33,000 nt of DNA from Octopus bimaculoides (Eukaryota). The stretch lies in NCBI RefSeq assembly GCF_001194135.2, contig NC_068992.1, forward strand, positions 64,684,164 through 64,717,163, written 5' to 3'. Made by a program: the position numbers and the translations under genes. Below are positions 1 to 19,679 of this stretch, in pieces. Position 1 is the stretch's first letter, and each line of letters opens with the position of its first letter. Below the pieces are notes generated by a model. It ran no database searches, was not told where the DNA came from, and saw only the letters and a list, made by a program, of their open reading frames with translations.

Positions 1-434
1 TAATTTCTATTTTTTTCCCCCTTACATATTTCTTTCTCTCTTGGATGCCCTTTTATTTTCCTTAAAACCCGTTGAAATCCTTTTCATAGTGAATACTACT
101 ACTCGCATATCAAAGACGATGCTGCCTCCACACTACGTCTCCTTCTACTGCAACTAAATTAATGAGTTGCATACCACTTCCATTCAAGGCCATCCCGTAT
201 ACCCGTTTCTCCTCCATCTCTTATCATCTTTACTTTCTGTCTGTTTGTCTCCTCATCTCCACCCCCACCCAACACATATACCTTCATAATTTCAGAACTA
301 TTTCTTTACAGAAATGCATCTCGCTGACATTTCCTTTTCGCCAAAATTTCTTTCCTGCAAGAGTTCAAACTATGTTCAAGTAGGTCAAGGTCGCATTTAC
401 AAAAGGTCGAGGGCATCGCTCCCCACGCCCTGAA

Positions 435-590
435 TAATAATGGTTTCATATTTTAGCACATAGCCAGCAATTCGACCCCTGTGTTCAACTGGTACTTATT
501 TGACCCCGACCGATTTTGACCTTAGAACGTAACGAATCCGAAGATATATTGCAATGCATTTTGTCTAATACCCTCGCGATTGGGCTTTAT
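435..590 (-). mobile_element. SINE family A (core ..gtcgataaa(a)taagtaccagttga..), degenerate
   Basis: Reverse complement of the core at 455-510. Confidence 0.65.
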
Positions 591-640
591 AATAATAATA
601 ATAATAATAATAATAGTCTTTCATTGAAACAGACTGGTCA

Positions 641-851
641 TATGGCGAGCTAGCAGAATGGTTGGCATCCCGGACAAAATGCTTAGCAGCATTTCGTCCG
701 TCTTTAAGTTCTGCCGACGTTGACTTAGTTTTTCAATCCTTTGGGAGTCGTTAAATAAGTACCAGTTGAGAATTGAAGTCGAAGTAATCGACTATCTCCC
801 TCCCCGGGAATTTCAGACCCTGTACCTATAAGAGAAAGGATTATTATTATT
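641..851 (+). mobile_element. SINE family A, near full length with (ATT)n tail
   Basis: tRNA-like head tggcgagctagcagaatggtt.., core gtcgttaaataagtaccagttgag, tail gattattattatt. Confidence 0.75.
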
Positions 852-2374
852 AAGAATGAAAGCCCACAACCAAAGATGAAGAATTACCGAATGAATAAAA
901 AGAATTAAAAAAAAAAATTCTAGCATTGACTGATTTCCCTATATATTATTTAAAATTTATTTAGATTATATTCAATTATTTAAAAGAATAAAAAATAAAA
1001 TAAAAATACAGGAGAAAAGCAGAAATGGCCGAGAGAGAAGAGGAAATTAAACCAGACAGTTTTAGTAAATATTTACTGGTCATTATATGAAACGGGGTAG
1101 ATAATTGCAAGGTGTGTCAATTATTGGGTAGCAATTAATTAAACTGAAGGGGTGGATACAGAAAGTGCGCGCACGCACAGACACACATAAAATACATACA
1201 TATAGAAATATACACACACACACACACACATGAATTAATGTGTGTGTGTGTGTGTGTGTAAGTTTTTAACGTCATATGCAGATATATCTAAATCAAACGA
1301 AATTTAGAACTCAATGCATTTGCAATAGTTAATTCTTCAATAAGAAGACGTAAGTGATTATCGTCTTTTCTTCACTTCAACTTCATTCTTGCAGGCTAAC
1401 GAGAGAAATGACCTAACAAAAATACAAAAAAATAAAAAGGAAAACAGGGAGCTTGCCCCAGGTCACTCTGATCGAGCAGACTTGTAATCAAAAGCGCTCC
1501 AGCTATGACATCATATCCTTTTGTTTATTACGGACTACACTGTTATGTCTAAGGGAGTCCTTTTTACAGAAGGGCGTAGAGTTTGGAGGAAATTTAGTTG
1601 TTATTTCTAGCCGGTTAGGCAGCCGCATAGAAGCGCCTTCGTTGCTCTTGTAACAATGATGCGATGTGAAATGGTGTACAGTGTTAGGGGTCAGAAATAT
1701 ATCTAACATTACTGAGCTTTATATAGACTGGTACACGGCCAATGCTATATTTAGGAGATGGTGAGGCGTTCATGCGTCTTCCAATATTTAGCGAAAGCAC
1801 AAGTTTAAAATAAAATAGCAATGATAACGGTTAATCGAGGTCTCTCGGAGGAAATTCTCATGACTCCCGTGTAGATTAAAACTGTTGGACTTCAAATATG
1901 TTATATCAAGGTCTTTTCCGACACACGTTCAAATCCTGCCGAATTCGATACATGGATGATTATATTGATAACAATGTGATAGACTCAAGTGAAACCACTT
2001 GATTAAATTTTCTACTTCCTACCTCCCTCTCAGAATAAATTNNNNNNNNNNNNNNNNNNNNNNNNNNNNNNNNNNNNNNNNNNNNNNNNNNNNNNNNNNN
2101 NNNNNNNNNNNNNNNNNNNNNNNNNNNNNNNNNNNNNNNNNNNNNNNNNNNNNNNNNNNNNNNNNNNNNNNNNNNNNNNNNNNNNNNNNNNNNNNNNNNN
2201 NNNNNNNNNNNNNNNNNNNNNNNNNNNNNNNNNNNNNNNNNNNNNNNNNNNNNNNNNNNNNNNNNNNNNNNNNNNNNNNNNNNNNNNNNNNNNNNNNNNN
2301 NNNNNNNGGGTTAGGGTTAGGATCGACCACTCAAGACTAGCTAGCGCGTCCGGGACCGTGCTGCTTTAGTAGTA

Positions 2375-2377
<3 letters not shown>

Positions 2378-2413
<36 letters not shown>

Positions 2414-2452
2414 CAATAATAATAATATATATACATATATATATATATATAT
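2378..2452. repeat. (TA)n microsatellites
   Basis: Direct reading. Confidence 0.95.
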
Positions 2453-2760
2453 ATGCGTGTGCACGCGTATATATGTATGTATGTGTGCATGTAAATCTCT
2501 GGATAGGCAGGTTCTTTGTGATTTTGTCATATGAATATATATTTAACTACGTACGTATATACACACACACACATATGTAAAGGTATTTTGGATTTCTACT
2601 CGTATATGTATGTATATATACACACGAAACGTCTGTTGATATTTAAATATTATCAAATGAATCAATGAGAATAAAATAAGCTTGTCTAGATTGTAAAGGT
2701 TGTCGGTTATGAAATGGTCAGAGATTGTCTAAAAGAAGAGATAATAAATAGTGAACTGAC

Positions 2761-2869
2761 CAGTGTCGGCGTTGAGGGGCCCAGCATTCATAAATTCTAT
2801 GATGCCATCAATACTTTTTTTGTTGCCATTTAACTTCCAGTTGCCTCCAACGAAGAATTTTCGACCCAT
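2761..2869 (-). CDS. TPI1: Triosephosphate isomerase, first coding exon ([36 protein letters not shown] + phase-1 G)
   Basis: Manual translation gives the TIM N-terminal signature [13 protein letters not shown], including the catalytic Lys. ATG context is caccATGg. The exon ends at ACT G|GTCAGT, matching the first-intron position I recall for vertebrate TPI (after ..ADT). No downstream TPI exon was recognised in 1-2760. Confidence 0.95.
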
Positions 2870-6960: not shown

Positions 6961-7646
6961 ACTTTTTATATACCTTTATGATTACCTTGCTTGCATGCAA
7001 AGGATATATCTTTTTTGTTTGTTTTTTTTTATACAATTATTGACCTTTCTATTTTTTGACCTCCTACCAAATTGCCCAAACCAGCCAGGCTGCCAAAGTG
7101 CTTAATCTGGTTNNNNNNNNNNNNNNNNNNNNNNNNNNNNNNNNNNNNNNNNNNNNNNNNNNNNNNNNNNNNNNNNNNNNNNNNNNNNNNNNNNNNNNNN
7201 NNNNNNNNNNNNNNNNNNNNNNNNNNNNNNNNNNNNNNNNNNNNNNNNNNNNNNNNNNNNNNNNNNNNNNNNNNNNNNNNNNNNNNNNNNNNNNNNNNNN
7301 NNNNNNNNNNNNNNNNNNNNNNNNNNNNNNNNNNNNNNNNNNNNNNNNNNNNNNNNNNNNNNNNNNNNNNNNNNNNNNNNNNNNNNNNNNNNNNNNNNNN
7401 NNNNNNNNNNNNNNNNNNNNNNNNNNNNNNNNNNNNNNNNNNNNNNNNNNNNNNNNNNNNNNNNNNNNNNNNNNNNNNNNNNNNNNNNNNNNNNNNNNNN
7501 NNNNNNNNNNNNNNNNNNNNNNNNNNNNGTTGTGTCGCTGAATTTTTACTGAGAACATATATTTTTTTCATGGTTAGATGATTCGGCATCTATTTCTAGC
7601 ATATAGGAGTCCACTTTTGCTGGTCATCCCTCTTATTTTTGTATGT

Positions 7647-7890: not shown

Positions 7891-8157
7891 GTAGGAGAAT
7901 ATCACATATATCCACACATACAAACACTTTGGTAATGTTCTCTTTATTATATTTTTAACAAACACATATAAGAATACAGTTTAACACACAAACACACACA
8001 AAGGAAATAATATGAGAGTAAAAATAAATAATATATAAGTTTTTACCTGATACAGCACATGACGATGGTGGCGATCAAGACTAATATGATGACAACAAGT
8101 AGGCCAATAACTAAAGAAGAAAAGAATAAGACACTCAGTCAAACATTATTTTATATA

Positions 8158-10942: not shown

Positions 10943-11019
10943 TTATGAAACATGACAGTTTGTTCTGCCACTCTCCCACCCCACACACCATCCACTATGA
11001 ATCTTAAATATTCCATCAC
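10943..11019 (-). CDS. Secreted four-repeat protein, probable last coding exon (GDGIFKIHSGWCVGWESGRTNCHVS*)
   Basis: Acceptor ctttccattgcagagtttcag, phase-1 compatible, TAA at 10943-10945. With it the chained CDS is 1377 nt (458 aa + stop). Confidence 0.62.
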
Positions 11020-11304
11020 CTGAAACTCTGCAATGGAAAGTTCAAATGATTTTATCCTGGATTCTGGGACATTATCAAAGAATTCACTTCCTAACTGGAT
11101 TTCTTCTCAGTTGGCTGTTCACTACATTATACACCCAACCATTTTATGTTTGTGTATATGTGATGTTTGTGTATATGTGATGAAAATATGTGTGTATGTC
11201 TGTCTCTGTATGTGTGCATGTGTGCCTTCATTTCTACTGATGTTGATGTCTGACATTTAAAATTCACAATATTTAAACAAGACATGTTCCCGTATACCGC
11301 ATAC

Positions 11305-11404
11305 CTTCTGTTATTAGACTAAATTCTATCACCATGTGATTCTCAGTTCCGCTTTCTTTTGTTGCTTTGAATTTATACACTGACTCACCATGCTTCAAAC
11401 TTAT
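11305..11404 (-). CDS. Secreted four-repeat protein, exon 9 (ISLKHGESVYKFKATKESGTENHMVIEFSLITE), phase 0->1
   Basis: Acceptor ctatcatttcag, donor G|GTATGC, 100 nt; same I-x-L...E-x-Y pattern as exons 5 and 7. Confidence 0.82.
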
Positions 11405-12467
11405 CTGAAATGATAGATTTGAAATATTATTTACACAACTCAGCTGTTTGAGTATTGATTTTGAGTTCCTTCAGTTCTTTATTAAGGTGTTGATCTTATT
11501 CGTCCTAGCACTCTCTATTTGTCTTTACGTTTTGTAGGGGAGAGACATTAAATTCTTTCCATCCCCCTCCAATAATATTTATATCAGTTCAATATATAGA
11601 TTCTACTGCTTGACTCTTCTCCTGTTCAGAAATATCCATCAAACATGTGATTAGCATTTTTGATCCTAATTCACTCTTAATGTCGTAAACCACTCATCCG
11701 TGAACCGCTTGAAAATGCACCTCATCACTAGGGACACAAACTAGTGGCACAGGATATGACTCGTATCATTGAAATCCATCGATTAGAAAGAAAGTTATTA
11801 TGTTCTGAACACACCTACCCATTCTTACTCTGTTTTGGCCAAATCCTTCTTTGAACAGGGAGTTAAAACACCAGAGAACTGTAGATGAGCATAAGATTTA
11901 AGAGAATGGCTCTCCATGCGACACTAATGGTAGGACATGGATTTAGCAGTGCAGAGCAATAGAACAGTCAACAATTATACACAGCTCCCACTGCATACAG
12001 TGGTAAGATGTAGCACTTAGGGGTACCTATTCACAGTAAGGTGGACTAAACTAGTGAGACTTAAACAGCACTGGAGATGAAGTTTTGATTATTTATGTGA
12101 AAAGTGACACTTTGTGAAGGAAGAGTTTACTTTGAAACAAGTAACACCTTCATCATCAATATTATCACCATCTCCACCACCACAACTGCCACCATCATCA
12201 TCATCATCATCATCAGATGGGAGGTTTGGGGGAATAAAGGAGGGAAGAAAGAAAAAATTAACCACAAGGTTGTGAAAAAAGACAACCCAGACTTGAAAGG
12301 TAATAGGATGGGTTATTTAGTGGTGGAGGGGAAGGTCTATAAATATTTTCAGAAAAGATTTTCAAGTTGGCTCTACTAGTATTTTGAACCCAGTCATTTT
12401 GAAATCTCAAATTCACTAACATACATCATTGGATATTTTAAAATGGGTTAATAAAATATTTTTTTAC

Positions 12468-12694
12468 TTCATTGATTTTGAAAGGTTTATCCATAAAATG
12501 CAGTTTTAAGCCTGTTACTTTATCATCTTCATACGTCTTCAAATGGAAATTATCAACACAGTTAGATTTATGTTCACAGTGATTTCGCCAAATTAAACCT
12601 TTAGAGAAAGAAGATAGTGTGTCTTGAATTATTTCTACAGCGAAAGTTTGCTCATGTTCTTCAGGAGAACTAATTCTCAGATACCAATTTTTAC
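12468..12694 (-). CDS. Secreted four-repeat protein, exon 8 (KNWYLRISSPEEHEQTFAVEII...KPFKINE), phase 1->0
   Basis: Strong acceptor tttttttctttattgcag, 227 nt open. The donor GAA|GTAAAA is weaker but sits at the same position in the repeat as the phase-0 introns of repeats 1-3. Confidence 0.82.
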
Positions 12695-12737
12695 CTGCAA
12701 TAAAGAAAAAAATGAATTATTTTCTCAGTATGCGAGT

Positions 12738-12748
12738 GTGTGTGTGTA

Positions 12749-12803
<55 letters not shown>

Positions 12804-12820
12804 AGAGAGAGAGAGAGAGA
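12738..12820. repeat. Compound (TG)n(TA)n(GA)n microsatellite
   Basis: Direct reading. Confidence 0.95.
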
Positions 12821-13571
12821 AGGAGGGAGAGAGCAATAACAAAATGGAGGGGATAAATAGGTGGTATTTATCAACTTTTAGACATTATATTATGTCAATT
12901 TATTTATTTACTAAAAGGACAATTATAACAATATACATACATGTATGACATATAATGCTTTACATATATAATATATAAAGTATAAAATATTAGTAATTAT
13001 TAAAATATATAACATAGACCAATAGAAATTGGGATAATATCTTACAGCTGTTTCAACCAAGAGGCAATAATACCTCATTCTACTTTTATCCCTCCAGTGG
13101 ACTGAAGTAACTAGTAGATGAAATTGAGGTACTTGGGTGTTTCTCTAGGCTTAGTCAGAGATTTTAGAAAGTACATAGGGTCAAGTTACAAATATAAATA
13201 CACACATATGTACATAATTTTACATATACATACATATACATAAATATACATAAATACATATACCTACACATAAATGTACATGCATATGTGTATGTATATG
13301 CATACAAATGAATCAATTATGATTATTATTATTAGATGCATTATATTATTCATATTAGATAAAATATAAACAGAGGTATGAGAAAGTTATTATAAGAGGA
13401 GTAATATTGTAATTTATAAAATCAATATATCTTAAAATTATTTTAGTTATGTAAGAATGAAACTGTGTGTACATGAGGAATATACATACATATACGCACA
13501 TACATATATATTTCCATACAAACATACTAATAGGTGTGTGTGAATGGTTTCGTTGTTCAATAAAATCTTAC

Positions 13572-13665
13572 TTTGCAGTAGTTTGCATGAATATTTAGCT
13601 GAGACTGTCTTGTATAGGTTAGTACAACCATATTCTTCTCCAGTAAGTATACTTGTCAGGGCAAG
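13572..13665 (-). CDS. Secreted four-repeat protein, exon 7 (LALTSILTGEEYGCTNLYKTVSAKYSCKLLQ), phase 0->1
   Basis: Acceptor ataatttttcag, donor A|GTAAGA, 94 nt. Confidence 0.88.
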
Positions 13666-13788
13666 CTGAAAAATTATGAAACAATTCACTTTAAGTTAAT
13701 TACTTTTATTATATATTTAAATTAATGCAAACACTTACATTGATATAAGGGCAGTCCTTGTCATTTTGAACTTCATTTTTATCATTAA

Positions 13789-14858
13789 TCATCATCCTCG
13801 TTTAACGTCCGCTTTCCATGCTAGTATGGGTTGGACGATTTGACTGAGGACTGGTGAACCAGATGGCTACACCAGGCTCCAATCTGATTTGGCAGAGTTT
13901 CTACAGCTGGATGCCCTTCCTAACACCAACCACACCGAGAGGGTAGTGGGTGCTTTTACGTGCCACGGCATGAAGGCTAGTCAGGCAGTACTGGCAACAG
14001 CCACACTCAAAATGGTGTCTTTTATGTGCCACCTGCACAGGAGTCAGTCCAGTGGCACTGGTAATGACCTCGCTCGAATGTCTTTTCACGTGCTACCGGC
14101 ACAAGTGCCAGTAAGGCGACGCTGGTAATGATCACGCACAAATGGTGCTATGTACGTGCCACTGGAACGGAAGCCAGGCAGCTGCTCTGGCAACGATCAC
14201 GCTCGGATGGTGCTCTTAGCGATCCACTGGCACAGGTGCCATCATGATTTTGCTTTCACTTGCCCCAAAGGTCTTCGCAAGCAGAGTTTAGTGTCCAATG
14301 AAAGAGATGTTAGCATGGGTGCCAGTCGTCGAATTTAGTTCGATTTCGATTTCACTTGCCTCAACAGGTCTTCACAAGTGGAGTTTAGTGTCCAATGAAG
14401 GAAAAGTACGCATAAGTGGGCTGGCTACTCCCCTGGCGGAGGCCTTGGATTTAGGTCTCACTTGGCTTGCCGGGTCTTCTCACGCACAGCACATTTCCAA
14501 AGGTGTCGGTCAGAAGTCATTGCCTCGGTGAGGCCCAATGTTCGAAGGTCGTGCTTCACCACCTAATCCCAGGTCTTCTTGGGTCTACCTCTTCCACAGG
14601 TTCCCTCAACTGCTAGGGTGTGGCACTTTTTCACACAGCTACCCTCATCCATTCTCACCACATGACCATACCAGCACAATCGTCTCTCTTGCACACCACA
14701 ACTGATGCTTCTCAGGCCCAACTTTTCTCTCAAGGCACTTACACTCTGTCGAGTATGCACACTGACATTACACATCCAGTGGAGCATACTGGCTTCATTT
14801 CTTGCGAGCTTACACATGTCCTCAGCAGTCATGGCCCATGTTTTACTGCCATATATAG
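13789..14858 (-). mobile_element. 5'-truncated RTE-clade LINE (ORF2 C-terminus, 3' UTR, (CAT)n tail) in intron 6 of the secreted-protein gene
   Basis: GSKTWAMTAEDMCKLARNEASMLHWMC..ERRLCWYGHVVRMDEG..GRGRPKKTWD; 3' end catcatcctcgtttaacgtccgctttccatgctag. Confidence 0.93.
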
Positions 14859-14920
14859 TGATCAATAAAAATCCTCACATCTTCCATCTCTCTCATTAAT
14901 CATATATATATATATATATA

Positions 14921-14969
14921 TCATCATCATCATCATCATCATCGTTTAACGTCCGCTTTCCATGCTAGC
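14921..14969 (-). mobile_element. RTE 3'-end stub with (CAT)n tail
   Basis: (CAT)n cgtttaacgtccgctttccatgctagca only. Confidence 0.8.
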
Positions 14970-15089
14970 AACACACACATATATAAACAGAAAAACACAA
15001 ATGTACATTTGCATACACACACATATGTGTGCAAGTACGTACACAGTGACATACAGAGAATAACTCCATTTAATGTGGGAAACCTCTGA

Positions 15090-15260
15090 CTGGTTGACTT
15101 GCTAGAAATAAGTGCCAAATCTCTTTTAAATCACATCCCACTGTCTTAGAGAAGAAGGACACACTGAATAAAGCCTTTCGGTGATGTTCATGGCTGGAAT
15201 GTCTTTCTTTCTTGATCCAATCAAGCGAGCCCAACCAGGACTTTGATAACGACACAAAAA
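15090..15260 (+). repeat. Unclassified dispersed repeat (related pieces at ~1470-1620 (-) and ~31790-31870 (+))
   Basis: Shared gctagaaata(g)c..aaatc..aaatcaca and atggctggaatg..gatc..atca(g)agcga segments. Confidence 0.45.
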
Positions 15261-15295
15261 TAGAACAGAAAAGATAAAAAACACAGAATTCTTAC

Positions 15296-15528
15296 TTTGA
15301 GAATGTCAAAAGCGTTGTTGGTGTCATTGAAGTATATATCAGCCTTATTTGTTCTTATATTTCCAATATTGGTAAAACCAGCTAATGTGGGAATGTACGC
15401 TAGCTTTCTTAATATTACATGATGTGAAGAATATCTTCCACTGCCATACACTCCAAGAGTTACCTTTATTAACATTATCTTACTTATTTGTCTGGGTTGT
15501 GAGGTTAATTCTACTTTCCACATCGAAG
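15296..15528 (-). CDS. Secreted four-repeat protein, exon 6 (SMWKVELTSQPRQISKIMLIKVTLGVYGSG...NAFDILK), phase 1->0
   Basis: Long polypyrimidine acceptor ttttcttctttcttttttag, donor AAA|GTAAGA, 233 nt open. Confidence 0.9.
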
Positions 15529-16267
15529 CTAAAAAAGAAAGAAGAAAATAATATAAAAAAACAAACAGTCAAAAAGATGGTAGAGTAGTTGTGAGACATT
15601 AACAAATGAAATGTGCTGAAAGAAAAGAAGAAAAATTGGAATTACTTGGCATTTTAAGATCCAAGCTATTCCTCAAAGGATGGTGACTGAAATATTTCTT
15701 GGAATAATTTTGTTGAAATACAATGTCTTCGTCTCAATTAATTTAGAGAATGACGAAGCATTTATTAAATAACTCTGGAATTTTAATGAAGGGTTTTCCA
15801 TGTAGACCACTTTAAAACAAAGAATTGATATTAGGGAAGTAGGGGCCATCTTTGGCAGGTTGGCACCAAAATGGTTCAGAAGTAAATGAATGGTAGCTGT
15901 TAATATTTGTAATCATATTAAATTCAATGATTTAAATAATGAATAGGAGAAAGAATTATCATTAACAATATTTATTACTAACATTAAACACTTTCGATAT
16001 ATATGTAACAATTTATTGTATGTTTTGTATGTAAATCAAACAAAATGTGAACTTGTAAAAGGTGAGAGCTGCAATATCTCATATAAATAAAATCAGAATT
16101 GCCTTTTAATAGTGAGAATAATTTCTTAGAGAGAAAGTGGGGGAGTAAAAATAATATTTAATGAAACAATATTCATCCAAGATCTAAAATTACAAGGTGT
16201 CCCAGCTACAATACGAATGGTCTCTACGGAGGGCTTAATTCTAAGGCTTTTGTAAGCCTGCTGAAAC

Positions 16268-16531
16268 TTCATCATCATCATTGTTTAACATCCATTGTCC
16301 ATGCTGGTAACATGGAAGGCTGCACCAAACTCCAGTCTGATTTGGCATAGTTTTCTGCAGCTGGATGCCTTTCCTAATGCTAACCACTCTAAGAGTCTAA
16401 TGGTTGCTTTTATGTCCCACCGGCACAGGTGCCATTTGCGTGACACCAGTATGTGCCACGACTGTGATTTTACTTGACTTGATGGTTCTTCTTCTCAAGT
16501 ACAACATAATGCCAAAGGTCTTGATCATGGC
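16268..16531 (-). mobile_element. Diverged, internally deleted RTE 3' fragment
   Basis: (CAT)n, then ..ctccagtctgatttggcatagttttctgcagctggatgcc.., matching the 3' UTR of the other copies. Confidence 0.8.
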
Positions 16532-16753
16532 AGAATGTAGTGTTTAGTTTTAGATCTTTGGTTTGGGAAATGGATTTGGTGTCAGGAAGATTTATCTGTT
16601 GAAAGTAACATCAACAGCATGGAACATTTAGAATTCATCCTGCTCCCTCTCTTTATTATCAATAACATCTGGTAAAAGCCACACAGGTAACAAGACAGAA
16701 CTATTTCATTGTTTCTTTTAAGATTATATGAGAAATACTTTTTATCAACTTAC

Positions 16754-16853
16754 CATTTACCAATAAACATTCATGGTAAGAAAGGTGAGAAAATGGAGTA
16801 TGAAGATAAATACAGGAATACGTTTCGGAAGTTTTCATATTCTTCAGTTTGAT
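16754..16853 (-). CDS. Secreted four-repeat protein, exon 5 (IKLKNMKTSETYSCIYLHTPFSHLSYHECLLVN), phase 0->1
   Basis: Acceptor gttattttaatttag, donor G|GTAAGT, 100 nt; 110-nt intron from exon 4. Confidence 0.9.
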
Positions 16854-16963
16854 CTAAATTAAAATAACAAAAAACAAACAAAATTACATCTCCAGGAATT
16901 ACATGGGTTTACACAGGTGTCACATTTGTCCTGGATCCAGTAATAATAAAGAGTTTTACTTAC

Positions 16964-17169
16964 ATCTGTGTCCAGATTAAATTTTCCTTTTGTCAATAAC
17001 TTTATTTTTAATGGTGTATATGTTTCCATAGGTAGAAAGAATGATTTTTTTGATGTTTTAGAATTTTCTCTAAATGGTACTCTTATTTTAACATAAGGTG
17101 CTAACTCTAAAAAAAGCTCATAATTGCCATATGCCTTCTCACGTTTAACTTCAATGGTCCAGTGTGTCC
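16964..17169 (-). CDS. Secreted four-repeat protein, exon 4 (THWTIEVKREKAYGNYELFLEL...KFNLDTD), phase 1->0
   Basis: Acceptor cttacttttctag, donor GAT|GTAAGT, 206 nt open. Confidence 0.9.
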
Positions 17170-17685
17170 CTAGAAAAGTAAGAGACAATAAACACGTGTC
17201 ATCATCAGGGACAACAAAATTTCAAAATTAATAAACATAAAAGAATCATCATCTTGTAAGGAGGTTGGATATAAAATCAAATCTTTAGAATATGATTGGA
17301 AAACATTTAGTTTTTCTGCTCTTCAACCATAGATTTATTACATTTCTTTTCATTTGTAATTTATTTAGATTTATTGATTTCTATATCAAACAACAGAAGG
17401 AGAGGCTTTAAAAACTTTAAATAGTCACACATATGAGAAGGTACCACTAAATGTAGAATAATGTGTCTTTCCTGGGGATTGAAAGGCAACAATAGGATTT
17501 GAACTCATAATATTGATCTTTGCAGTTGAGCTCACTAATATTACAGTCACTATGCTTCCTTGTGCATTTTGTAGGGTGTGGAGGTTGTACAAAAGAAAAC
17601 AATTCCTTGAGGAATTAAAAGAGAGAAAAAAAAAAAAACAGTAAAAGAACAAATAATGAAGAACAGTTCTGAGGCAAAATCTTAC

Positions 17686-17773
17686 AATTTGCTAATGTCA
17701 ATTCAGATCCGCTGCATGGTGTTTGGCACAGAACACCATACACTTCCTGAAGATCCTGATTTTGGACAATTGC
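17686..17773 (-). CDS. Secreted four-repeat protein, exon 3 (AIVQNQDLQEVYGVLCQTPCSGSELTLAN), phase 0->1
   Basis: Acceptor cttctattttag, donor |GTAAGA, 88 nt; only this frame is open through to the donor. Confidence 0.8.
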
Positions 17774-17814
17774 CTAAAATAGAAGTACATCAGTGAAGGA
17801 TTTTAAAATAATTT

Positions 17815-17985
17815 CATGATGATGATGCTGGGAATGATGATGGTGGTGGTGGTGGAGGTGAGGGGGTGATGATGTTAGTGGTGGTGGTGGTAGTGGTGGT
17901 GATGTTGGTGATGGTTGTGTTGGTGAGGATGTCCATGGTGAGAGTGATGATGACGATAATGATGATGATGGGGATGATGATGATA
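17815..17985. repeat. Compound (GAT)n/(GGT)n trinucleotide tract in intron 2
   Basis: Direct reading; it explains the His/Pro/Ser/Ile-run ORFs in the track. Confidence 0.92.
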
Positions 17986-18465
17986 ATGACAGTAAAACAT
18001 TTGTAGCGAGACCAAATGAAAACAGCAAAAATATATGTGTTAAAAATTTCAGTTGATCTATTCGGCACAGGGTGGATGGAACTATGCAAATTGTGGAATA
18101 CACCCAACAGTGTTTTGAGTTGAAATATAGTTGGTTCAGTCAAAAGTTCAAATGCAGCTGGGGGGTTGAAATGGGAAATAAAAGTTATTTCCAGATGTTT
18201 TCTCGGAGGAACTAAAGTTAGCGTAAATATAATTTATTTATGCCATTCATTGTTCACCATTACACTAAGGTCTTCTTGACCCCCCCCCCCCNNNNNNNNN
18301 NNNNNNNNNNNNNNAAAATATTGTGAAATTTAATTGGAACATTCTGCATATAAAACACATTAATTACCTGTTTCAGCTTATTTCTTTTAAAATACCAAAA
18401 TACCATAATTCTTGATGAAACAGGTGTAATAAAATCTGTGTGTGTGTGTGTTTATTTTAATTTAC

Positions 18466-18662
18466 CTTGAACTCAAAAGACGGACCAACTTTAATAACTT
18501 GTGGTCTTGTTTCGTTATCCAAGTTAATTTCAGTTTTGCAGCAGTCCTCCATATTTGCACATGGTATGTTTTTATATTTATCCTTGTTCAAAGTAACGTG
18601 AACTGGATTACTATGTACCTCAGTGAAACAAACTTGTACATCCCATTTTCTGGCCTGGGTAT
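18466..18662 (-). CDS. Secreted four-repeat protein, exon 2 (TQARKWDVQVCFTEVHSNPV...VGPSFEFK), phase 1->0
   Basis: Acceptor ttatttgtcag, donor AAG|GTAAAT, 197 nt, open and phase-compatible on both sides. Confidence 0.85.
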
Positions 18663-18784
18663 CTGACAAATAATTTGAAAAAAAAGAAAAATGTTTGTCA
18701 ATTATTTTTAAAACATCTTAAAAATATTTATACTGTGAATAGTTATTCTATTCTTCTCCTCTCTAGGCTCCAATATACTCAGCT

Positions 18785-18930
18785 GAAAAAAAAGGTACCA
18801 GCACTAGATTGGTACTTATTTTCAGGTGTGACATGAAAAGAATCCCCTTGTTCAAGGATGCAATGCATCGCCCTGTCTAAGAATTGAACCCATGAACCTA
18901 TGTTTGTGAACCCAACATCTTGAGCCTTCA
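18785..18930 (-). mobile_element. Degenerate tRNA-derived SINE head and body
   Basis: Reverse complement reads ggttcatgggttcaattc..gcatccttgaacaagg..ataagtaccaatc. Confidence 0.5.
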
Positions 18931-19624
18931 CAAAGGTTAAATAATAATAAAGAAATAGCATGAAATTGGTTTGTTATTATGAAATTAAATAGATTTTAGT
19001 TCAATAAAGTAATTGTGATTTAGAGTAAAAATTGTAATTTTGGCAGAAAGCACTTTTTTGTGTTGGGGTGGGGTGAAGAATGTTCTGTCATCATAGAACC
19101 TCACAAAGAATGGTGCAAACAAACTCCCTTTAAATGGGAAAACCAAGTTCAAATGACTGCAGTACAGGAATTCTGCAATAGCATTAAACTTTTAGCTACC
19201 ATATTTCTGTTGAAATGCACTGCCAATTAATTTTGGAAGTTGTGAAGAATTCATTGAAATAACTTTGTCATTATGAAGCTAATGAGATTTTGATGGAAGC
19301 TTTTACTTCACATCATTTTAAAACAGAGAATGTCTATGATTCAACCAGGAGTGACGTTATTATGCAGTTTGGGGTCAAAAAGATTAAACCAAGTGACAGA
19401 TAAAGTCAACCATCCAAGAACAGGAACAGAAATGAACTCTACAACAAGCTACCACAGAATCCTCAACTATCCAGTTCCACTCTTTAGACTTTAGCTGACC
19501 TGAGGCTGTTGCACAAGCCCCTAATCCAAGGTACCATACAGTAGAAACTGACCTGAAAACAAACCTCTTCATCATACACAGCCATACATAATGATTGCAG
19601 AAATAAATAAATAAGAGAACTTAC

Positions 19625-19679
19625 AAAGGAAATGAGGTAAAACAAGGAATGAAATACTCCAATAGGAAAGAACCAGCAT
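19625..19679 (-). CDS. Secreted four-repeat protein, coding exon 1 (signal peptide MLVLSYWSISFLVLPHFL + phase 1)
   Basis: gccATG start, 18 mostly hydrophobic codons, strong donor T|GTAAGT. Joins in frame to the next exon to give ..FLYTQA/RKW, a plausible signal-peptidase site. The ATG choice is inferred; the frame is open a little further upstream. Confidence 0.7.

Follow-up and report, generated by a model that had tools for sequence, protein, structure and literature searches.

The PLAT/LH2 domain (PF01477), which forms the C-terminal domain of lipases and the N-terminal domain of lipoxygenases, is an eight-strand beta-sandwich of about 100-115 residues. It serves for colipase/GPIHBP1 and lipoprotein binding in lipases and for Ca2+-dependent membrane binding in lipoxygenases; apart from the case described here, it is known as an accessory part of secreted lipases, of lipoxygenases and of cytoplasmic proteins. 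Its tandem repetition is represented by LOXHD1 with 15 PLAT domains, and its association with membrane proteins by polycystin-1 and the REJ family; the PLAT domains of LOXHD1 and polycystin-1 are cytoplasmic. Here we analyse LOC106884469, a gene on the minus strand of a 33,000-nucleotide stretch of the Octopus bimaculoides genome (contig NC_068992.1, positions 64,684,164 to 64,717,163), called below the window, which has a G+C content of 37% and contains nine N-gaps. This gene probably encodes an octopod-family type I membrane glycoprotein with four tandem PLAT/LH2-like sandwiches and a single transmembrane (TM) helix.

The modules of the window protein resemble PLAT/LH2 domains in their eight-strand sandwich and in their size, and the ectodomain resembles the PLAT/LH2 domains of lipases, which are extracellular and disulfide-bearing. 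However, they show no detectable sequence kinship to PLAT/LH2, and the protein differs from lipases and lipoxygenases in having four such modules in tandem, no catalytic domain and a probable membrane anchor. It shares tandem repetition with LOXHD1 and membrane-protein association with the polycystin-1/REJ group, but in contrast to both its repeats lie between a putative signal peptide and the TM helix, and they bear Cys pairs as well as sequons for N-glycosylation. Because of this position and these features, the repeats are expected to face outward.

A preliminary description, made from the letters of the window, had proposed here a hidden ten-exon gene for a secreted 458-aa protein built of four exon-pair modules. 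Its ten minus-strand segments were reproduced by splicing as an uninterrupted 1377-nt frame (458 aa) with no phase conflict and with the proposed phases; all internal exons have AG/GT flanks, with GTAAG, GTAAA or GTATG donors and pyrimidine-rich acceptors. Exons 1-9 are real. UniProt A0A0L8I326_OCTBM (443 aa) is 100% identical across them in a protein search, which also returned 13 other Octopus proteins at 38-68% identity, and RefSeq XP_014791356.1 (LOC106884469, 455 aa), which belongs to the A0A0L8I326 cluster, has nine exons identical to them. The XP_014791356.1 locus (GCA_001194135.2, CM046612.1:64,682,206-64,713,842, reversed) is 100% identical to the window, gaps included, and the gene extends over 19679-8043 of the window. 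Moreover, paralogues at 40-68% identity map onto the segments of exons 1-9 in tblastn, and the gene of one of them, P0010, has the same intron positions and phases. The gene is not hidden, since it is present in both UniProt and RefSeq; annotated twice as “uncharacterized”, it is no discovery in itself. These exons, and the assembly gap between the second and third of them, are the following:

Exon 1: 19625-19679, minus strand, start codon followed by the greater part of the hydrophobic leader (MLVLSYWSISFLVLPHFL...).
Exon 2: 18466-18662, minus strand, end of the leader (…YTQA) and the module 1 long exon (strands 1-5), phase 1 to 0.
Assembly gap of 23 N: 18292-18314, within intron 2 (17774-18465), between exons 2 and 3.
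Exon 3: 17686-17773, minus strand, module 1 short exon (strands 6-8; AIVQNQDLQEVYGVLC...), phase 0 to 1.
Exon 4: 16964-17169, minus strand, module 2 long exon.
Exon 5: 16754-16853, minus strand, module 2 short exon, containing the N215 sequon and two Cys (Cys196, Cys211) that are invariant in the family.
Exon 6: 15296-15528, minus strand, module 3 long exon (MWKVELTS...IKVTLGVYGSG...).
Exon 7: 13572-13665, minus strand, module 3 short exon with the invariant Y305, G306 and C307, and also C320.
Exon 8: 12468-12694, minus strand, module 4 long exon (NWYLRISSPEEHEQ...), the best-conserved segment of the family.
Exon 9: 11305-11404, minus strand, module 4 short exon, leaving in phase 1 through the donor GTATGC.

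The hydrophobic leader (MLVLSYWSISFLVLPHFLYTQA) has small residues at -3 and -1, is conserved family-wide and is modelled by AlphaFold2 (AF2) as a helix at residues 2-23; we consider it a putative signal peptide. The context upstream of the start codon, CCATC.ACTGCC-ATG, is common to the window gene and P0010. As the preliminary description had noted, the leader, the starts of the four modules (KWDVQV, HWTIEV, MWKVEL, NWYLRI), four sequons (N68 NET, N113 NWT, N215 NAS and N283 NDT) and numerous Cys residues, 12 in the ectodomain with the conserved pairs among them, are all present. The 23-N gap does not affect the reading frame, since it lies inside intron 2, the AF2 model is continuous across the exon 2/3 junction (pLDDT, the predicted local distance difference test, 84-90), and P0012 alone among the family members has extra residues at this junction.

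Two exons make up each module: strands 1-5 come from a long one (phase 1 to 0) and strands 6-8 from a short one (phase 0 to 1). The proposed symmetry of these units at phase 1 holds for the window gene and equally for the gene of P0010. The phase-1 introns are located between the domains, while in every module the internal phase-0 intron coincides with the beginning of strand 6 (84|83-89, 182|182-187, 293|293-298 and 400|400-405), and each long exon has a Trp within four residues of its start (W25, W117, W219 and W328). The description of the modules as four repeats stands on this architecture, that is, on the shared intron site, the eight strands and the exon phases, but not on sequence likeness: pairwise z-scores between repeats range from -1.4 to 1.9 (Smith-Waterman against shuffles), and profile-profile comparison of the per-repeat family profiles (HHalign) gives probabilities of at most 1.5%. 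On structural and gene-architecture grounds, a common modular origin of the four modules is likely.

The number of modules varies within the family: P0005 and P0006 carry an extra one, and P0021 is devoid of module 4. In P0005 and P0006 the inserted module combines a long exon of module 2 with a short exon of the module-1 type.

The modelling and structural comparison recommended in the preliminary description (AlphaFold and Foldseek) were run for the full protein and for repeat 1. The full-length AF2 model, built on a 17-sequence alignment, has a mean pLDDT of 80.8 and a predicted template-modelling score (pTM) of 0.74. It is all-beta after the leader, and its four modules, which measure 93-109 aa, have eight strands each by strand count only. 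In Foldseek comparison with the PDB, the only matches combining a probability of 0.99-1.00 with a root-mean-square deviation (rmsd) of 4.1-5.5 Å (114-136 columns) are lipases and a lipoxygenase: lipoprotein lipase (6e7k, 8erl, 9nrn), pancreatic lipase and its relatives (2ppl, 1eth, 1hpl, 2oxe) and coral 8R-lipoxygenase (3fg3). The PLAT/LH2 domain is the only beta-sandwich of these proteins and the query is all-beta, therefore the match must be to PLAT. Repeat 1 modelled alone (pLDDT 90.5, pTM 0.83) again has eight strands. In these predicted structures at least one module is clearly PLAT-like, while repeat 1 is borderline. The PLAT/LH2-like character that had been proposed from the strand pattern is thus retained at the level of the fold.

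Several observations weigh against this assignment and agree with another explanation, in which generic eight-strand sandwiches have converged on a PLAT-like shape, or are closer to C2 or some other sandwich, so that they would not be kin of PLAT/LH2 and lipid binding would not be required. Pfam PLAT is unmatched at E<=10 in the window protein and in any of 17 family members; because no member matches it, PLAT family membership in the sense of homology is unproven. Among PDB sequences, neither the whole protein nor the profiles of repeats 3 and 4 had a relevant match, and these profiles found no PLAT protein. The Foldseek E-values of the PLAT matches are modest (0.02-0.12) and the matches are not assignable to a particular module. 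The best-probability match of repeat 1 alone, lipoxygenase 3dy5, has a probability of only 0.85 with a TMq of 0.48 and an rmsd of 6.1 Å; sandwiches of carbohydrate-binding modules (CBM), collagen-binding proteins and antibody fragments (Fab) follow closely, and C2-domain proteins occur among the Foldseek matches at low probability. Nevertheless, every full-model match with a probability of at least 0.99 and low rmsd is a PLAT-containing protein, three protein families being represented; the best match of repeat 1 is again a lipoxygenase, and the domain size and strand count fit PLAT. We therefore regard convergence as possible, although on the whole doubtful, and prefer the PLAT/LH2-like reading.

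Other structural candidates were rejected. PirB is the top Foldseek match by E-value, but with an rmsd of 28 Å and a TM-score of 0.11 it does not support an immunoglobulin (Ig) receptor; PirB and the further nominal top matches, namely KIR, phage tails and binary-toxin B components, span rmsd values of 14-30 Å and are meaningless, as are the matches among viral structures, which are exclusively high-rmsd phage tail proteins. Weak matches of the repeat-4 profile (NLRP4 PYD and a phage muzzle protein, E 0.1-0.8) were set aside as chance.

The end of the gene is the part in which our reading departs from the preliminary description. After exon 9 there are three candidate 3' ends: read-through of exon 9, the tenth exon of that description, and the RefSeq exon at 8110. 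The 2015 annotation represents the first of them, passing through the exon 9 donor and ending …ITE-GMRYTGTCLV before a stop. The others, and the gap behind them, are the following:

Proposed exon 10: 10943-11019, minus strand, GDGIFKIHSGWCVGWESGRTNCHVS and a stop, acceptor tttcAG at 11019, in neither annotation.
Transmembrane exon: 8043-8110, minus strand, acceptor ttctttAG, entered in phase 1, (V)IGLLVVIILVLIATIVMCCI(R); its end as an internal exon is 8047, with the donor CAG|GTAAAA.
Assembly gap: 7113-7528, 0.5-0.9 kb downstream of the transmembrane exon, the sole unread place for a tail exon.

The transmembrane exon was found independently, before the RefSeq model was seen, by a minus-strand hydropathy scan; most paralogues have a TM helix and a tail. 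The exon has a hydropathy of 3.36 and good splice sites, is entered in phase 1, the exit phase of exon 9, and is 59% identical to the TM segment of the closest paralogue P0003 (tblastn, E=1.6e-4). Together with its flanking intron sequence and the donor CAG|GTAAAA it is near-identical in P0010. The RefSeq model uses this exon and terminates at a TAA (8045-8043) which overlaps the conserved donor at 8047; its product ends …MCCIR, leaving a tail of three residues beyond the 19-residue hydropathy window.

Splicing of exon 9 to 10943-11019 would instead give the 458-aa secreted four-module protein, as the sole product or as an alternative isoform. The acceptor tttcAG is acceptable and the frame is open to the stop; furthermore, TM-less isoforms branching right after exon 9 are predicted at a related O. 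sinensis locus (P0043, P0019, P0041) and in P0007. However, the 25 residues of exon 10 align to no relative in tblastn, both annotations skip this exon, and no DNA similarity to the P0010 stalk mini-exons (see below) was found in it. In-phase open reading frames (ORFs) of at least 25 codons arise by chance from 6 of 36 acceptor-like sites in the exon 10 interval, and downstream of it lies the intact, conserved TM exon in the correct phase. Exon 10 is thus unsupported by relatives and annotations, and such ORFs arise readily by chance; of the proposed ten-exon gene, exons 1-9 stand, while exon 10 and hence the 458-aa product do not. We consider the secreted protein unlikely: “secreted” is probably wrong for the main product, which is most likely membrane-anchored instead, as are most relatives, type I membrane proteins with tails.

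Three points tell against the membrane-anchored product. The RefSeq model has no untranslated regions, its gene range being equal to the coding sequence, and so the exon 9-TM junction may rest on homology. No tail exon occurs in the readable sequence of the window. In O. sinensis, the related locus LOC115217968 has, besides an isoform with the TM helix (X1), three without it (X2-X4), which branch directly after exon 9, so that a soluble product is possible in the family.

The second of these points may be explained if the donor at 8047 is used and a tail exon lies within the gap 7113-7528. In this case the gene would encode a full signalling receptor, and the RefSeq …MCCIR product would be truncated by the assembly. 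The donor and its flanks are conserved with P0010, which splices from the matching donor to its tail exon, and the RefSeq stop is no more than the TAA which overlaps the donor of the window gene. Of the 30 family products with 300 aa or more, 18 have a TM helix, and in 16 of these it is followed by a tail of 43-196 aa bearing Tyr motifs; the gap lies just 0.5-0.9 kb downstream. On the other side, the cytoplasmic-tail exon was not found in the 5 kb of readable sequence up to the triose-phosphate isomerase (TPI) gene, either by tblastn with all paralogue C-termini, by a tail hidden Markov model (HMM) against all ORF fragments, or by a phase-correct acceptor-ORF scan, and the tail of P0005 is likewise very short (11 aa). 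A receptor completed within the gap is conceivable, and we regard it as a tentative reading beside that of an anchored protein which ends soon after its TM helix.

The TPI gene, read from the same strand, is the nearest one downstream (window 1-2869, minus; its first exon covers about 2869-2750; PF00121 on record). Its position leaves about 5 kb in which a tail exon of the receptor could lie.

A profile search gave 18 proteins of the family, and exhaustive HMMER scanning of 1.84 billion representatives gave 30, in many cases fragments. The 18 proteins, and seven more of the representatives that were looked up, come from O. bimaculoides, O. sinensis, O. vulgaris and Argonauta hians, with the exception of one match to a fish protocadherin, which was TM-only and was rejected as spurious; the remaining, mostly short, HMMER representatives are outside this species count. 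Several paralogues are located on a contig equal in length to the chromosome of the window. All named members are labelled “uncharacterized” or “hypothetical”, in agreement with the earlier suggestion of a lineage-specific protein with no named orthologue. The UniRef name “Vitellogenin domain-containing protein” of P0007 (LOC106873066) is backed by no Pfam family in the 17 members scanned. In the literature, twelve gene/protein identifiers of the family occur in no paper, and no paper links PLAT with octopus or cephalopods. Judging from the sequences collected, the family is small, fast-diverging and, among named members, restricted to octopods (Octopus, Argonauta), each Octopus genome having roughly 8-10 loci.

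The window gene is closest to a paralogue of its own species, with 68% identity. Among proteins of O. sinensis and O. vulgaris that align along most of its length, the best have 56%; a 215-aa O. sinensis fragment (P0017) reaches 60% across 47% of the query. The nearest relative being a same-species paralogue, this comparison suggests a rapid birth-and-death evolution of the family. Such turnover also agrees with a view of LOC106884469 as a decaying or non-functional duplicate, a young paralogue which has lost its tail and stalk, neither of which was found. But the ten coding exons all have open frames and canonical splice sites, the family-invariant residues are all kept and the AF2 model is confident, and we find decay very improbable for what we read as an intact membrane-anchored member of the family.

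Members of the family differ mostly in their C-termini. The tails of the TM-bearing products contain the motif D/E-I-Y-x-N (in Octopus and Argonauta) and a C-terminal Y-E-E/D-L/F. None of the tails examined contains a canonical immunoreceptor tyrosine-based inhibitory motif (ITIM; S/I/V/L-x-Y-x-x-I/V/L) or activation motif (ITAM; YxxL/I-x6-8-YxxL/I), the YSDL-x4-YEEL of the P0021 tail being too short in spacing for an ITAM. In P0007 and P0019, a Lys-rich C-terminus, conserved between O. bimaculoides and O. sinensis, replaces the TM helix and tail. The gene of P0010 (L001) displays the complete plan of the family: its leader exon is followed by four long/short pairs and three 42-nt phase-1 stalk mini-exons, after which come the exons for the TM helix and the tail.

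The three mini-exons of P0010 (L001 30297-31776, LOC106880589) are near-identical, as are their intron flanks, and each encodes a 14-aa N-glycosylated stalk unit (DEIHFNETTVVNKT and similar). They are the product of a very recent tandem exon duplication, by which the stalk length is set. The window gene has none of them: between exon 9 and the TM exon, homologues of the mini-exons score at shuffle level only.

In its architecture the octopod family is similar to the clustered immune-type LILR/PirB and KIR receptors of vertebrates, in which likewise a leader precedes 2-6 tandem sandwiches, each encoded by phase-1 exon units, and these are followed by a stalk, a TM helix and a tail with Tyr motifs. 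Both groups include members with and without a tail or TM helix, vary in domain number and undergo rapid lineage-specific turnover. However, the octopod fold is not Ig (rmsd 14-28 Å for the PirB and KIR matches), and the tails differ from those of ITIM/ITAM receptors in the absence of a canonical ITIM, one short-spaced ITAM-like pair occurring in P0021. An immune role of the octopod family is pure conjecture.

Some other features of the locus are located in its introns. A dispersed repeat is present at window 13862-14856 (intron 6) and 28530-29294 in opposite orientation, with about 88% identity between the copies. The intron 6 copy contains a 100-aa ORF (14563-14865, minus strand) with the motif …RLCWYGHVVRM…GRGRPKKTW, which we take to resemble the C-terminal region of ORF2 proteins of non-LTR (long terminal repeat) retrotransposons; it has no Pfam match. 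Intron 7 contains a (TA)27 microsatellite (12747-12800), located 53 nt upstream of the acceptor of exon 8. Two overlapping minus-strand ORFs of 109 aa in intron 2 (17774-18143), rich in Ser, Pro, His and Thr/Ile runs, derive from low-complexity simple-sequence DNA beside the 23-N gap and are no evidence of coding.

We suppose that after cleavage of the leader the LOC106884469 product would be a rod of four eight-strand sandwiches followed by the single TM helix encoded at 8110-8047, and that the protein may reside in the plasma membrane with its PLAT-like rod facing outward. Among the family members the phase-1-symmetric modules have been duplicated, lost and shuffled: their number ranges from 3 to 5, and that of the 42-nt stalk mini-exons varies too. 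By analogy with PLAT, the ectodomain may bind a lipid, a membrane, a hydrophobic surface ligand or a protein partner, and the long-tailed relatives could relay this binding via tyrosine phosphorylation at D/E-I-Y-x-N and Y-E-E/D-L. The window copy would be either tail-less (…MCCIR) or equipped with a tail exon concealed in the assembly gap; if truly tail-less, it may act as a co-receptor, a decoy or an adhesion molecule. It weighs against this scheme that the function is entirely inferred.

One can speculate further, as a long shot, that octopods evolved their own cell-surface recognition receptors, in which a PLAT-like extracellular rod is used instead of Ig domains, exon modules are shuffled, and tailed (phosphotyrosine-signalling), tail-less and soluble forms coexist. 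With such receptors, hydrophobic or lipid cues could be recognised on contact, for instance in immunity or by the skin and suckers. What is new here is the structural and architectural annotation of an orphan octopod-restricted family. If confirmed, it would represent an unusual use of PLAT-type domains as outward modules of a receptor family and a clean example of phase-1 exon-module shuffling within a lineage-specific family, and it provides a concrete candidate for studies of cephalopod-specific cell-surface recognition.

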